A stretch of DNA of 63,453 nt, the filler included, from Parasitella parasitica NRRL 2501 (lineage: Eukaryota > Fungi > Mucoromycota), in NCBI GenBank assembly GCA_025201805.1. It is 9 parts of 9 records of this genome, joined end to end, with 100 filler letters (N's around TTAATTAATTAA, not from the genome) between each part and the next. Parts side by side here need not be neighbours in the genome. Positions count along the whole stretch, not along the records: positions 1 to 28,408 come from MU619445.1; 8 more parts are not named here. One strand, given 5' to 3'. The notes under the pieces were generated by a model. It did no database searches. It saw nothing but the letters and a program-made list of their open reading frames with translations, and was not told the DNA's origin. The position numbers and the translations under genes are program-made. Below, piece by piece: positions 4,487-16,447 of the stretch (position 1 is the first letter of the stretch; each line of letters starts with the position of its first letter).

Positions 4487-5632
4487 CTGTCATTACGATG
4501 GCTATTCTGAAGATGATTTACAGCTTGTTGTTTTGCTAGATTTGATAATTGAGGAGAAGATGCAAACGAATCCAAGTCTAGAGGAGCTGGAGGTCGAGGA
4601 GGAGGTGTAGCTTTTTGCTGCGCCAGCTGAGAATTCCTAATGACAGTGCTGTAATCCGATACTAAATCATCGTCAAGATATGGCTGGTGCTGCTTGTTAT
4701 TGTTATAGTATGATGAGAGCGCATTGTTGTTGCGACTACCGAGGTCTGGAAATGGTGAGGCAACCCGAGCCGGGATATTTTTATCTGGCACTGCAAGTGG
4801 AGATGTCGATGTGTGCCGCTACAGTGCATTGTTCAGTCAGTGAGAATAGCAGACAAAAGCCAGTAAGGCGCACTTACTCTTCTCTTTTTCATTTCTTGCC
4901 GAAGAGCATTGATGGCATTGTGGATTTTGAATCTTTTGCCAAAAGTAGGAACATCAATCTCTTTTAGCGAGTCCAGGGTCAATGCCAATAAAACGTCGCC
5001 ACTGATTTCCTGATCTGAGACAGTACCATTAGAAAAGCGCCCTATAAATTGCATATTGTAATGTGTACCTTTAAAGTTGTCTGCGAGCTGTTTGTCGAAT
5101 CCTATGCTTATTAACCATATCGATACTTGATTGGAAGTCCATTCCTCAGCCTTGGAGTTTAATAACGGATTTTCCAAGGACTCAATGACGGTTGAATGTA
5201 TGTTTTTCGAAGAGATGGAAGACATGCAGGACACAGAGCTTGTCATCTTCTTTTGCTGTGTGCTATTGATAGCCGTTGCTGGTGTTTTTACTTTCGGTGG
5301 AGAGTTTTTCGGTGAGTTTAATGCTGTCCAAGGTGGTTGTTTGGCAGTATATGCAATAGGAAATAGACCAGTTTGGCCACTTATATTTCGGCCCTAATGG
5401 CAAAGAGAGTTTTGTTTAGTAAGGTAAGAAAAAAAAAGCAAGGCCCCCTTGCTTGTTCTCTTTCTCTCTCTCTCTCTCTATGTCAACAATGTCTGTTTAC
5501 CTGCCACCAGCCGTCATTATAGCCCTCATCCTTCTCGAGAACAATGACCTGCTCCCCGACGTTTATCGAAATCTCATCCGTATTTTCAGCTTCGAACTTG
5601 TGGATTGTGTAGACTACTTGTTGCTCAGGCAT
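2591..5632 (-). CDS. Boi1/Boi2/Pob1-like polarity scaffold (SH3-SAM-PH) with a C-terminal CH-like domain; multi-exon
   Basis: The first exon, missed by the ORF track, reads MPEQQVVYTIHKFEAENTDEI...DGWWQ/GRNISGQTGLFP (SH3). SAM: WTSNQVSIWL...EISGDVLL...FGKRFKI. PH: EGWLYKQGDKYKTWNKRWFVL. CH-like: CIGWINANI...LNSGEILLEFLENL. Confidence 0.85.
4456..4485 (-). repeat. (CAG)10 coding polyQ microsatellite
   Basis: CTG x10 on the + strand; encodes the Q-run of the Boi-like protein. Confidence 0.9.
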
Positions 5633-6837
5633 ATTTCATAAAAATGCACTGCAGACAAGAAAATTTTTCGTGAAAGAGAGAGGAAACAGGAGTAAAGGGC
5701 GCTCAAGTGAATGGTTCATCATTGATCATGTTTCAATTAAATGCGGGTACCCAATTAGAGCGTCTAGTCTTACATGAGATTTCTAAAAACCCGACCCATT
5801 GCACGGTTCCTGTGCTACTTGCTGATCTGCAAACAGAAGGCTACTTGATCTCTCCAAATTGGATTTATATTAAATGATGCTTTTTAGCTTGATGGTCATT
5901 TTATTATCATATTTCGAATCACTCTGAGCCAAGTTTTTCTGATGCTGTGGCTTTTTCTTCTTGTTCTCCTTAGTATTCGGTCATGCAACCTCCGGGTCAA
6001 ACGCCATTATTACTCGATCAGGAGTTGTGAATAGTTATGCTTTAACGACGATGGCGTGTGTCGCACAAGAATACGGAAAGCTGTTATCGTTGGCTGCAGC
6101 ACATCGATCTTTTTGTACGAGTAGCGAGTTTTTTTTTTTTTCTTTTATCTTTGTGGCTAGATTGACAGTGGGCTAGATTTAGCAACTTGTTGCTTTCGTT
6201 CAGCAATGTAGGTAACATGTGAGCACAGATCTTTGTTTGTCAACGTAGTACCGGTTGTAGTTTGGGAGACAGGATCCGTGTGCAGGCTTGTGCTTTGTAG
6301 TGTAGGCGCTTTTCTCGAGAATTCGACTGGAGCTTCACAGTGCATGTAATCCCATCAGTTTTACCCTTCGTAGGAGGACTAACAAAGACATCGAAAGCAG
6401 CTCATTTTCGATGTTCGCATACCAATTTTTTTTATAAAGCTCGTCTACTGGATTAATGTTCATTAGCTCCAAGTGAAAGTGAAAGTGACCTGGGCTCATT
6501 GATTTCCTTCCTGATAATTATCCTCCATGCCCAACCTACACCTGGGCCATCTTTGATACATCTGCTGACATTTGCATGGCTTTGTGAGCTTCGGTAATAC
6601 CTTCCGCTAAAAAGTGGGCATTTAACATCTTTGTTCATAAGAAACACAAGCACTTGTGTACAGTGGCGTCCACTCTTTAAAAGAACCCCCACAAGTTATA
6701 GCTATCGCTAGAAAGATTACCCATGAATTTACAGCCTCGATGCTGATTAAAGCGAAAATTGATCAGTTTTTTCTTTTTTTATTTTCGACCAACCCCTACA
6801 TTTCAAACAAACAGCCCCAGGTTACAACAATATAATA

Positions 6838-11473: not shown

Positions 11474-12415
11474 ATTAATTTGAATTATTTGAGAGAAGGA
11501 AAAGAGAAATTGTATTATTTTGAATCTCGCTCCTCTCCTGCTTGTTTTGCTTTGTCAACATTCGGCTTATGCACGTGATACGGTATAACATGCTTTCTTG
11601 TGTTCCTGATGCTGATGGTGGCGTTCGCAACTTGTTTTAATAGCATCTGTGAAATGTAACCAAATTGGTTCTCTAAACCGAGCATGATATTTAGAGTGCA
11701 ACTTCTCTCGCTACTCAAATGAGCTCAAAAACAAATAATGAGTAATACAAAAGCATTTTAAACTAGAACAGAGAAAGTGAAAGAAAAGTCCATTATTTTG
11801 TTTGAACTTAATACGCAATAGTTTTTATTTATATTAATGATATTATATGATGAAGTTAATGAATTATTTGAATTACGTACCAAACAAATGAATAAAAGAA
11901 ATTTATTCCGTAATGAAGCTCTCCCAATCATTGGCGGTCAAAAAGCCTTCATCCAAATTTTTAATTTGTTGATCAATGCACTCCGTTATGCGACGTTCTT
12001 GCTCTTCAAGCTCTAATTTATCACTGGTATTTGATTCATGCGAGCATTCTGAACCAGGTGAATCTTCTCGAAAGAAGAGGATAATATTGGTAACGCCAAT
12101 TGGAGCTGCCAGATACTCCACAGCATCTTTCAAACATGCTTCAAATATAATCTCGAACTTCTTCAGATTAATGGCAATGTTCCTCTATTCATAGACCAAC
12201 AAAAGTTAGATCATTTTACCACAAACATAGTACACCTTCTGCCAAAATGATGTCTCAGGAAAAAAAAATTAAAGTGTCGCACTGTGTGCGGCTTTGATTC
12301 ATCCAATGAGTGGTGAAAAGATGAACCGGGTTCAACAACAAAATGAACCGCGTTCAACGAAAAAATGAACCGCGTTCAGTAAATCAATTAATCTGCTTTT
12401 TCATTCCAATATCTA

Positions 12416-12671
12416 ATGAGCATAACTCGTGATCAAGCTATTTGTAGCTTTTTTTTGTGAAGACTATAGCAAGGCAAATGCAGCAAGATTGTCTAAAAGG
12501 ATCGAAGAATTAGGCACTTTCGATGTGTGTTATGAAAATGATTGTAAGCGACCTGTTCTACTCAATGTCGCCGACATACGTTCTCAACCTTCAATTTTTA
12601 AAATTTACAAAACTTCGAATGAAGAAACATGCAATGGCAAAACGATGCCATCTAGTAGCTCGGCTAAATAA
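12416..12671 (+). CDS. Short ORF starting in the left TIR; paralogue of the N-terminus of the element's main gene (T8 frameshift near the start)
   Basis: MSITRDQAICSFF/CEDYSKANAARLSKRIEELG...PVLLNVADIRSQPSIFKIY; continues past the TIR boundary. Confidence 0.5.
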
Positions 12672-12773
12672 AACAACTTAAATTTTTGTCCGTATGCGAA
12701 CGATGTGAAAATTTCATTAAACATATACAATTATAAAAGATCAATAAAAATACAAGTTTAAATAGGATAATGT

Positions 12774-14122
12774 TTATGGTATAACAATAGGGCACAGTGA
12801 AGTTTTTAGACTTTTTTTGGATCTTTGAGTTGGTGCTGATCTACAATCAAAAGATGATAACACTGTTGGGTCATTCAACACAGCCTCTCTCTTGAATTTG
12901 TGGAATTTGTTGTCATCAAGTAATTTGTCAACGATAACTGTCTTTAATTTTTTGTGAATACTAACAAAGATGTGTTAGAAGTGTAACTAAAGCCGGTTTT
13001 TTTGTATGCAATTTAACTTACTTGAAAAAGCTTTGTATATCATTTATGTTTGTGGAAAGTCCTGGGAAGTCTATGGCTACAAGACAAATGTCTGTTTCAG
13101 ATGAATTGATATAAGAAAGCATCGCTAATAAAAATATTATTATTAGTCTTGTTGTTGATAATCATTCACAAGTTAACAAATACATTGGGTATCTCCATCT
13201 ACACCTATCAATTCATTCAGTAAATCAGTGTTGACATTCATATCTGTTGATTCGAATTCAGCGGCGGCCGAACAAGACCATGACACGAAGACCATCTCAC
13301 ATAGTGATCTTTCTTTCAAGCACTGCACCATGCTATTCAAAAGACTTTTTCTATTTTTGTCATTATTGTCGCCAATGGACTTCCTAGCGTAACCAATGAT
13401 GCTGCAATCTTGGTTTTTTAAAGAGCTAATGTAATTTTGATAGTGTGGAATAGATGTAGTGATGGATTTTATAATACCCTCTATCAATAGAGAATAAGTA
13501 ATGGTATTTCTGGGAAACTCCAATAGTTTGTCACCTCTAAATTCATTTTTCATTACATAAAGTTTCCTAAAGCGAAGATTCGATCCTCTACGCCTCTTCC
13601 TAGTATATGGCATATCAATAAAATCAACCTTTCTTTTAGAACACCAACTTGCAAATGCTATTTCAGACTTCTTGCTCATGCATTCAGCTTTTGAAATAAC
13701 TGATTCATAAACTTCTTTATTTTCAACTTCTTGAAGGGAATAGAGTGCTTCATTTTGAGGATTTGTAGTTTTGTAAACCACATTTAGAAACATGATTACT
13801 TGTCGTTCTGAAACTAAATTAAAATTTTAGTGTCAAAATATGAGGAATATCATGTATCTTTCAGTGTTTACCAAGTTCAGCTTCTGCTCCCGCTTTTTCC
13901 TCAAGGTCCACATCTGAGTATTCACTTAAATAACGTTTAAAAGTTGTAGGATCGTTCCGAATCACACTTAAATGCACCAGAACAGGTCGTTTACAATCAT
14001 TTTCATAACACACATCGAAAGTGCCTAATTCTTCGATCCTTTTAGACAATCTTGCTGCATTTGCCTTGCTATAGTCTTCACAAAAAAAAGCTACAAATAG
14101 CTTGATCACGAGTTATGCTCAT
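12774..14122 (-). CDS. Spliced serine-recombinase/resolvase-like protein; introns 13871-13814, 13183-13125, 13021-12961; one frameshift in a T8 run at ~14082-14089
   Basis: Three GT-AG introns join in frame. Contains IIGYARKS (Y-x-R-x-S nucleophile motif of serine recombinases), then a helix, VFVSWSCSA, GDTQSML and ICLVAIDFPGLST in resolvase-like spacing. Confidence 0.65.
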
Positions 14123-16447
14123 TAGATATTGGAATGAAAAAGCAGATTAATTGATTTACTGAACGCGGTTCATTTTTTCGTTGAACGCGGTTCATTTTTT
14201 CGTTGAACTCGGTTCATTTTTTCACCGCTCTTTGGATGAATCAAAGCCGCACACAGTGCGACGCTTTAATTTTTTTTCTTGCGACATCATTTTGGCAAAA
14301 GGTGTATATCAAATCTTGCTTGTAAGGAAAGCACGGTAAGAAGATAATGGGCAGCTTGTGGCAGGTGATTAAAGGGAGAGATGGGGATTGAAGCATTGGC
14401 CTTTCGGTAATGAATGATGTCACCAATTTCAGTCATCTTCGATCCGTATATTGTTAGTGTCAGTCCATGAAATGGCGTACTTGATACTTCGATATGATTT
14501 ATGTTGGACTTGTAAGGGATGATTGATTTCAGGTATAATAGTCGCTTTTCTCTGAGCTTGTTGCCTTTTTCAAAATCATTCTGTACGGCATCTGGAAAAG
14601 TGCTTTCGCACTTATCCTCGCACGTGAACATGTCTCCGTAGCCATGATTAAACAAGATTAAATCCACTTTGCAGTCTTTTTCCTTGTCATCAATCTTCTT
14701 CTTCTTTTTTTATACGCGTAGACCCTTGCTTTAGTTGCATTTCTCTTTTTGCCGTTGGTCCCATTCTGCCAATGTTCAGCCTAATTCTGTCTACGTTCTA
14801 TATAATCTGACTCAATATCATTCACCAGAATATATACAAGGTGGTTAATTCTTTGGTCGCGCTTCCTTCCCAAGTAAGTGATTCTAAGTTGGTTATGCAG
14901 GCTTTCCATGTAATTAATTATCTGTTCCCATTTTTGTGACATACAACATCATTATTACAATCAAAATCACATACATACACTCACCAATGTTTAGGGCGTT
15001 TATCTTTTAGATACAGGCTCTTCATGTACAGAAATATGGCTACTTTCGTAAATGAAGTTTGTTGTTGTATTCCCCCACATCATACTTTCAATCGGGTGAT
15101 TATTGCAGAACCGACTTGATATCTTACAAACATTAAAAAACAGGCTTTTGGAATATCGAATGATCTGTTTGTAAACAGGATAATCAGATCCAGTAACTGA
15201 GTGCCTTATTATAATAGTATACAAGATCCCTCCTTTGTTGATATTGTGACAGAATGAATGGCATCAAGACAAATACTCCTTGCAAGATAAGTATTTCATT
15301 TAAACAAGACAACAGGATTACTTGGTATGCATGAGTGTACCTTTACGGCCATGATCGTATCGCTCTCCTCTGCCTGCTTGCTCTGCAGATGCCTAATGGC
15401 TAGACCAGATAAACTGTCTGTATGATAGAGTAATGTCCCAGTTGTTGTTTCCAAATGTACCTTTACGGCTACGATCGTATCGCTCTCTTTGGTTAGGATT
15501 CCTGCACTGATGCCTATTAGTCTTGTGAGATTGTCTATGATTTCTAAAGATGAAAATTGTCTTTTGTAGAAAATGCCAGTTGTCTTGTTTATTTTACCAT
15601 TGTACTCTCATTACATATGACTAACTGTAAATTTTATAATAGAGTTTTTGCAGTCAATGCATCTGTACGGCTTTGACAAATTTGGCTATTCTTTATAGAG
15701 AATCTTTTAGGCTTCCTGCTGATCATGGCTCCGAAAATTATTTTCTTTGGTTTTACACTCTATTATAAGCTTCTTGCCTTAGCGTTATTAATACTTGAAA
15801 GCAATTCTCTTTTATTCGGCTCGATTTAATAAATATTTACAAGTGTTGAGCATTTATTTAACTTGGTTTTCTGTTCTTGTCGTTAAGATTCACAGGCTTT
15901 TAATCTTCTAGTGATTTGATGATGTTTTACAATGAGCTCTAGAGTATCTTGTCTGATATATGGATACTTTTGGTCATTTGTTGAGTCAAATTTGGAATGG
16001 AAATATTGAAACTTTTGAGTTGGGTGTAGATATAGTTGCTATAATCCTCATGGGTGAGCAGGGTTGTATCAAGGATACAATTGTGTTTTTTCTGTCCAGC
16101 AGATCCAGAGAATTCGTGTCGAGAGACCTGGTTATTCCTTTCATGAAATCAGAATCTTGAGCTGTTTTCAAGTAGAAAAATGAACTCAGGAAACTGATCT
16201 GATCTGCTTTTGGAGAACTGATCTATTCAGATCCATAAATCGTCCTGGATAGAAACTTTGGTTGAAGCCGTTTTGGGAACATTAAAATCCATATATGGGA
16301 TCAAAGCTCAGTTCAACTTCTACTTGAAAACAAAAAAATGGAATGGCGGTATCTAAGAAAATAATATAATTGGCCGTGGTATGCATAGTATCAGGGGATG
16401 ATATCTTGCTTTAAAGAAGTAATTTTGGTTTCCATTGTACAAAAATG

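Follow-up and report, generated by a model that had tools for sequence, protein, structure and literature searches.

The window analysed here, a stretch of 63,453 nt from Parasitella parasitica along which all positions are counted, contains between positions 12233 and 14304 an element of 2072 bp with long inverted ends and one spliced gene. The element is probably a non-autonomous member of the Tc1/mariner (DDE_3) group carrying a passenger gene, and the passenger belongs to a genuine family, large and undescribed, whose core is serine-recombinase-like on the basis of predicted structures. A previous sequence-only reading had favoured the view that this protein moves the element and defines a new transposon class, with cargo on a non-autonomous Tc1/mariner-like element as the alternative. 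The shared ends and the TA duplication make the alternative the best fit, and the claim of a new class was not upheld, since the same ends occur on DDE_3 elements of the same genome. All genome searches were done with the 32.8-Mb assembly of P. parasitica, in which the window piece is contig C209. The boundaries of the element were defined as follows.

12231..12232, no strand: TA target-site duplication, left copy (empty-site comparison)
12233..12559, plus strand: left terminal inverted repeat, 327 bp, 96–97% complementary to 13979–14304
13979..14304, minus strand: right terminal inverted repeat, 326 bp, with iterons as well as the gene's 5' leader and first ~48 codons
14305..14306, no strand: TA target-site duplication, right copy (empty-site comparison and window sequence)

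The length of ~327 bp previously given for the inverted ends was correct. Contigs from public runs of another strain under the same species label (X24) and of two other organisms (X8 and X13) were compared with the window. Exact empty sites, which the sequence-only reading had suggested looking for, were found in X24 and X8, where one contig each joins position 12229 to 14304. At this joint, 2074 bases are skipped (2072 + 2), with 3 bases of ambiguity, and a single TA is left. Since the empty sites of X24 and X8 have just a single TA, this is a true insertion that duplicated the TA, and the TA noticed earlier on both flanks is indeed a target-site duplication. Such a duplication is the normal product of the Tc1/mariner superfamily. 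The complete element is single-copy in the Parasitella genome, with its terminal ~50 bp being recurrent. Its internal part is present in X8 and X13 at 96–97% identity on separate contigs, and the X8 copy sits at another locus, because the orthologous site in X8 is empty. As already noted from the sequence, the element has no recognisable DDE motif, and no DDE gene was found inside it.

The outermost part of both ends is of Tc1/mariner type.

12233..12281, plus strand: Tc1/mariner-type terminal ~49 bp with two GTCGCA-type motifs, common to DDE_3 elements (alignment A5)
14256..14304, minus strand: Tc1/mariner-type terminal ~49 bp, right end (alignment A5)

The terminal 22-mer TACACCTTYTGCCAAAAYGATG was detected 30 times in the genome when up to two mismatches were allowed, versus 0 times for the reversed control. 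At all ends examined TA precedes CACC, except at two of them (the right end of C43 and one solo match with two mismatches), and paired 22-mer ends enclose elements of 1.6–5.2 kb. The ends of the window element, TA followed by CACCTTTTGCCAAAATGATGTCGCA..., also enclose elements coding for a DDE_3 transposase. The sequence-only reading had stated beforehand that autonomous DDE elements with the same ends would speak against its proposal, and such ends were found at C8, C65, C5 and C43. An autonomous, TA-flanked element of 1.7 kb with 156-bp inverted ends is present at C8:358037–359736 (L054 501–2200), C65:170057–171756 and C5:209329–210979, the three copies being 98.7–99.8% identical to one another. 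Their intact open reading frame (ORF) of 439 aa matches PF13358 (DDE_3) with an E-value of 3e-28 and displays the motifs MDNAPIH and PYSPELNPIE, typical of Tc1-like transposases; this element looks recently active. The fourth locus, C43:109744–111373, has ends equal to those of the window over the first 22 bases, and encloses broken DDE_3 and helix-turn-helix pieces. In alignment A5 the window and the autonomous element match over the first ~49 bp and diverge after; GTCGCA-type repeats fill the 156-bp ends of the autonomous element, and the window keeps two of them. The same ends also delimit a 3.7-kb element at C31, which carries a ~33%-identical paralog of the window gene. The pattern is that of a Tc1/mariner family with cargo-bearing non-autonomous derivatives.

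Two further elements with the same 22-mer were observed. The first one, of 5.2 kb, lies at C106:86513–91696 (L020 499–5682) and has inverted-repeat arms of 663 and 509 bp; its cargo comprises a C2H2 zinc-finger ORF and repeated ORFs, with the 5' part of the cargo inside both arms. The second one, of 3.1 kb, lies at C115:98186–101281 (L052 501–3596) and contains a 436-aa ORF with no Pfam match.

The mobility of the window element would be best explained by a DDE_3 transposase acting in trans. The element keeps only the outer ~49 bp of the Tc1/mariner family at each end, and the transposase of autonomous relatives would cut and paste it, with insertion at a TA and duplication of this TA. The passenger unit between the ends consists of one gene, of which the iterons, the promoter region and the first ~48 codons occur a second time in inverted orientation, and the winged helix of the encoded protein would probably bind the iterons. 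Seen purely as a mobile element, it is a non-autonomous Tc1/mariner derivative of the ordinary kind. Several observations weigh against this explanation. The intact DDE_3 copies of the C8 type show 2 differences from the window ends within the first 22 bases, and the sole DDE_3 copy matching the window over these 22 bases (C43) is broken, so that a partner active at present can only be presumed. The Tc1-like part is symmetric on both sides of the passenger unit, for which simple capture gives no explanation, and the element is single-copy. Finally, a serine recombinase with a TA crossover core would produce identical TA junctions and an identical empty site. A palindromic miniature inverted-repeat element with a passenger inserted in its centre was also considered and dropped, as one arm matches both inverted ends by definition.

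The window gene is transcribed and spliced, with four introns, and its exons lie as follows.

13872..14122, minus strand: exon 1, small N-terminal domain (RNA contig begins at 14118; ATG at 14122–14120 out of frame)
13535..13813, minus strand: exon 2, winged-helix domain (RNA contig joints; fold of the homologous part)
13184..13480, minus strand: exon 3, predicted long helix, strand 1 with IIGYARKS, helix A and strand 2 (RNA joints, AlphaFold2 model)
13022..13124, minus strand: exon 4, predicted strand 3 and DFPGLSTN (13071–13048), at the position of the resolvase D-R-L-x-R (model and alignment)
12774..12960, minus strand: exon 5, conserved FDCR....QRSK tail and stop codon at 12776–12774 (RNA contig reaches 12818)

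A contig of 1092 nt from X7 (probably RNA, the run type being guessed) aligned with 0 mismatches in five blocks (14118–13872, 13813–13535, 13480–13184, 13124–13022 and 12960–12818). It defines four GT..AG introns of 58, 54, 59 and 61 nt on the minus strand, and not three as previously reported. The 54-nt intron is in frame and had been taken as coding both by the earlier reader and by the public model P0005 ('hypothetical protein BD408DRAFT_356353 [Parasitella parasitica]'), which shows 100% identity to the window gene over the aligned part; the 18 residues encoded by this intron are missing from homologues. Arithmetic on exon ends gave a reading frame that runs through all five exons without a break and closes with the stop at 12774. 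The gene had been placed at 14122–12774: the minus strand and the stop were correct, but the ATG at 14122 lies in a different frame, which comprises 14 codons and then a stop. The shift comes from a single additional T in the window's T-run near 14082; the copies of X24, X8 and X13 have one T fewer, and homologues read MNITRDQAICRFFCEDYS across the frameshift point. In addition, the window copy has a Thr in exon 3 where at least 90% of the members carry the Arg of 'RD', a Pro in DFPGL, and a 13-residue extension past the usual ...RSK end. With its frameshifted start and the R-to-T replacement at a near-invariant site, the window copy looks degenerate, and it is probably not functional even if its family is. 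The protein analyses were run on exon pieces, P0005 and database homologues.

Proteins of the family have ~355 residues and are predicted to consist of a small N-terminal domain, a winged helix, a long helix and a C-terminal serine-recombinase-like domain. The AlphaFold2 model obtained with P0005 (predicted local distance difference test, pLDDT, 80.3; predicted template-modelling score, pTM, 0.73) displays the order strand-helix-strand, insert, strand-helix-strand-strand. An exhaustive structural search among 48,161 PDB representatives placed serine-recombinase catalytic domains at rows 1–13 and row 15, row 7 (3lhk) being titled only 'putative DNA binding protein'. Rows 1–13 span Z 8.6–6.1, and the matches included gamma-delta resolvase (Z 8.6; root-mean-square deviation 3.2 over 103/115 residues), TP901-1 (8.1), Tn3 (7.8), Sin (7.7), phiC31 (7.3), Bxb1 (6.8) and TnpX (6.5), as well as IS1535 TnpA of the IS607 family (PDB 6dgb; Z 5.9). 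Residues 50–194 of the model align to residues 1–116 of the recombinase chain. Such Z values alone are middling, and the weight of this prediction comes from the clustering of one small family at the top. The ESM Atlas holds its own alignment-free model of the same protein, for which PF00239 appeared in 8 of 9 cluster rows with TM 0.52–0.64; for the AlphaFold2 model compared with the ESM Atlas, it appeared in 5 of 10 rows. Foldseek against the PDB gave no match at E 1e-3 for either the C-terminal or the N-terminal model. According to two independent predictions, the C-terminal domain would belong among the serine-recombinase catalytic folds. The N-terminal 200 residues were modelled with a pLDDT of 92; within them, residues ~87–176 match winged-helix DNA-binding domains, RFX reaching Z 5.6 and 5.4, and winged helices make up most of the listed rows. 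A long helix of more than 30 residues precedes strand 1 in the model; after strand 5, where serine recombinases have the long E helix that serves tetramer formation and subunit rotation, only short helices were predicted (182–192), and the tail has a pLDDT below 50.

The conserved motif G-Y-x-R-K-S closes strand 1 (strand 51–59 of the model), which is the position of the nucleophile in resolvases. In the window the corresponding IIGYARKS is encoded at 13400–13377 on the minus strand, with the Ser codon at 13379–13377; both this motif and the resolvase-like order of helices and strands had been recognised from the sequence and are borne out by the model. Across 44 members, which show 27–77% identity to the first sequence, the G, Y and R never vary, and conservation of K and S is at least 90%. 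In serine recombinases the two arginines of D-R-L-x-R, Arg68 and Arg71 of gamma-delta resolvase, are needed. Where resolvases have this motif, after strand 3, the family has D-[FY]-A-G-L-[ST]-T-N and both arginines are gone, so that the reservation expressed earlier about DFPGLS holds for the whole family. The equivalents of gamma-delta R68 and R71 are F/Y and L, and that of D36 is Ser, in a mapping based on the aligned ranges and on how the structural elements follow one another rather than on residue-level superposition. A HMMER alignment with gamma-delta was not used for this purpose, as its register in the second half disagrees with the predicted strand order. Alignment A2 was built without the last-exon fragments, which MAFFT had misaligned in A1.

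Sequence-based searches were far less conclusive. Pfam scans of exon pieces, public homologues and the 44 members gave no credible family, with 1 of the 44 matching PF00239 at an E-value of 0.12; NCBIfam scans gave nothing, nor did a search of the whole genome with PF00239. A profile of the C-terminal domain retrieved from the PDB gamma-delta and Tn3 resolvases aligned from residue 2–3, at E-values of only 0.08–0.8, which are not significant. The other matches were designed proteins and a few unrelated weak ones (RadA, 65-kDa virulence protein); these weak matches aside, gamma-delta/Tn3-type recombinases were the only natural PDB sequences retrieved. With hhalign, the family and Gin or PinE aligned over only 13 columns, corresponding to the serine motif, with a probability of 6%. 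The proposed likeness to serine recombinases is supported by the predicted fold and by Y-x-R-x-S, but not by any significant sequence match, and D-R-L-x-R is lost.

These data bear on the explanation in which the serine-recombinase-like protein is the element's own transposase and TA the 2-bp crossover core. The predicted fold and the conserved Y-x-R-K-S would agree with it, as would a domain order like that of IS607 TnpA, the presence of iterons in the ends, and the TA at both junctions with a single-TA empty site. However, the outermost ends are those of DDE_3 Tc1/mariner elements and window-type ends surround only 2 of at least 16 paralogs, both D-R-L-x-R arginines are absent in every member seen, the window copy has no in-frame start, and the genome yielded nothing with PF00239. 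We consider this explanation very improbable. Another one holds that the family consists of catalytically dead DNA-binding regulators or repeat-binding factors on a recombinase-derived fold, and that the inverted repeat either arose incidentally through aberrant repair of Tc1/mariner or provides antisense RNA. It would account for the loss of two needed arginines in all members and for the failure of every sequence model to reach significance; moreover, the different cargo at C106 likewise has inverted repeats, of 0.7–1.2 kb, reaching into its gene. On the other hand, Y, R, K, S and D-x-A-G-L-[ST]-T-N are near-invariant over 30–45% identity, as would be expected from a conserved active site and not from a scaffold. 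A dead protein is to be taken seriously, even if we tentatively lean against it. Because the two catalytic arginines are gone and the model shows no long E helix, it is rather unlikely that the family still cleaves or recombines DNA via the serine.

Besides the Tc1-type ends, the element contains repeats of its own.

12288..12308, plus strand: 21-bp motif with CCAAT, common to the inverted-repeat terminus of paralog C15 (L032); mirror copy at 14230–14250
12318..12383, plus strand: three 22-bp subterminal direct repeats (iterons), left arm, family D2 (repeat analysis)
14158..14223, minus strand: three 22-bp subterminal direct repeats (iterons), right arm upstream of the gene, family D1 (repeat analysis)
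12429..12671, plus strand: 80-aa open frame, left arm, repeating part of the N-terminal domain in inverted orientation; protein similarity extends past the 96% repeat

The 21-bp motif has 6 matches in the genome versus 0 for the control; it forms the very tip of the C15 repeat and in the window lies 5 bp inside the Tc1 part. No RNA contig was found in X7 over the left-arm frame (12392–12763). Paralog L029 likewise keeps a copy of the N-terminal domain that extends past the repeat boundary.

The tblastn search revealed at least 16 diverged paralogs in the Parasitella genome with 30–48% identity, of which only the window copy and that of C31 carry window-type ends. In many paralogs the first 45–65 codons occur twice, in inverted orientation and 1.4–2 kb apart; the loci often contain N runs, and some repeat arms of '100%' identity are N against N. 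The repeats hold arrays of short iterons which differ between paralogs, their tips have no Tc1-type motif, and the ends of different paralogs show no common sequence or flank. Near-identical paralog copies exist at two loci, C3 and C37. The one at C37:210585–215329 (L037) is split by ~3 kb, partly N, and a '1154-aa open frame' at this locus was traced to the N run and discarded as artefactual. A family profile retrieved at least 890 clusters at 50% identity (E ≤ 1e-3), or 515 at E ≤ 1e-10. Every named member is a 'hypothetical protein' of the Mucorales, from the genera Phycomyces, Hesseltinella, Halteromyces, Rhizopus, Absidia, Lichtheimia, Cunninghamella, Dichotomocladium, Mucor, Backusella, Mycotypha, Gilbertella and Thamnidium. 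Copies from Hesseltinella have inverted repeats of 400–620 bp with 22-bp tandem units. In Hesseltinella vesiculosa L063, repeats of ~620 bp (2353–2969 / 5089–5705) have in their outer part a 22-bp tandem array extending beyond the detected arm. No inverted repeats were found around the copies of Backusella, Phycomyces and Halteromyces. The expectation that homologues are enclosed by terminal inverted repeats was borne out in part: long inverted repeats recur, but not in these three genera, and with no common flank.

The copy of Backusella circina (L051 5901–7322) is 87.7% identical at the nucleotide level to window positions 14216–12800, over both gene and introns. Introns are 87–93% and exons 87–89% identical, differences are 1.75 times more frequent at third codon positions than at first and second ones, and the iteron region of the right arm is 84% conserved. 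The Backusella copy has neither Tc1 ends nor an inverted repeat. Parasitella is a fusion parasite of other Mucorales, and Parasitella and Backusella are genera of different families. These figures suggest recent horizontal transfer and only modest constraint. Judging from the Backusella copy and from the paralogs with different ends, the gene family is independent of the Tc1 ends.

A further explanation is a compound element, in which the gene and its own repeats form a mobile or invertible unit run by its protein, embedded in Tc1/mariner ends in the window and at C31, both systems being able to act. It would find support in the recurrence of long repeats with iterons and the first 45–65 codons in diverged paralogs and in Hesseltinella, in the 21-bp motif found both at the tip of the C15 repeat and, in the window, immediately inward of the Tc1 part, in the near-identical copies at different loci (C3/C37) and in X8 and X13 (96–97%), in the 88% identity with Backusella including introns, and in the invariance of G, Y and R among 44 diverse members. 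Nevertheless, units lacking Tc1 ends yielded neither an empty site nor a defined crossover, the Backusella, Phycomyces and Halteromyces copies have no such repeats, the paralog ends have no common sequence or flank, the catalytic arginines are missing and the model shows no long E helix. Furthermore, the 21-bp motif has its CCAAT ~110 bp upstream of the ATG and may be a mere promoter element. A compound element appears quite doubtful. Unlikely too is the broader proposal that the Mucorales family represents eukaryotic, intron-bearing enzymes derived from serine recombinases, with an IS607-like domain order and an active site rebuilt without the D-R-L-x-R arginines; they would act on their own iteron-bearing repeats by inversion, excision or transposition, with some units also hitch-hiking on Tc1/mariner ends and spreading between genera.

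A passenger gene on Tc1/mariner ends, the reading preferred here, has a precedent. Some Mariner elements carry Fanzor1 as a passenger, among them elements of Mucor and Rhizopus (Bao and Jurka, 2013, PMC3627910). Like them, the window element has a TA duplication, ends common to DDE relatives, no transposase of its own and a non-DDE passenger. Unlike them, it carries a protein with a winged helix and a predicted serine-recombinase fold instead of TnpB/Fanzor, its passenger has its own long inverted repeat and iterons, and the Tc1 part is limited to ~49 bp. IS607 elements have no inverted ends and no target duplication (PMC3627910). The window protein resembles IS607 TnpA in its DNA-binding domain located N-terminal to the catalytic domain, its small size, the serine motif and the repeated motifs near the ends. 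It differs in the 327-bp inverted ends, the TA duplication, the loss of D-R-L-x-R, the missing TnpB partner, and a DNA-binding domain which best matches RFX-type winged helices. With small serine recombinases (gamma-delta, Tn3, Gin/Pin; PF00239) the predicted structure has in common the five-strand alpha/beta core (Z 8.6 and 7.8) and Y-x-R-x-S ending strand 1, but the model shows no long E helix and no C-terminal helix-turn-helix, and the gene is eukaryotic with introns. Hin-type invertible segments contain an internal invertase gene between inverted repeats. The window element likewise has a recombinase-like gene between inverted repeats; its repeats, however, extend over hundreds of bp and take in the 5' end of the gene itself, and no orientation variants were seen.

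In the open-access literature, the only eukaryotic serine recombinases reported are those of IS607-type elements, which occur in a few protists and in giant viruses (PMC3627910), and nothing was found linking serine recombinases to Mucorales or to Mucorales transposons. The valuable part of the present analysis is the passenger family, which combines a winged helix, a predicted serine-recombinase-type fold and a conserved serine motif within iteron-bearing inverted repeats. If active, the family would represent a new eukaryotic recombination system and a possible tool for genome engineering; if inactive, a recombinase fold reused for DNA binding. The identity of 88% between Parasitella and Backusella, introns included, bears on horizontal transfer by a fusion parasite of Mucorales.

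To the right of the insertion lies an expressed host gene, represented by a well-covered RNA contig at 14496–15100 on the plus strand with a 121-nt GT..AG intron at 14874–14994.

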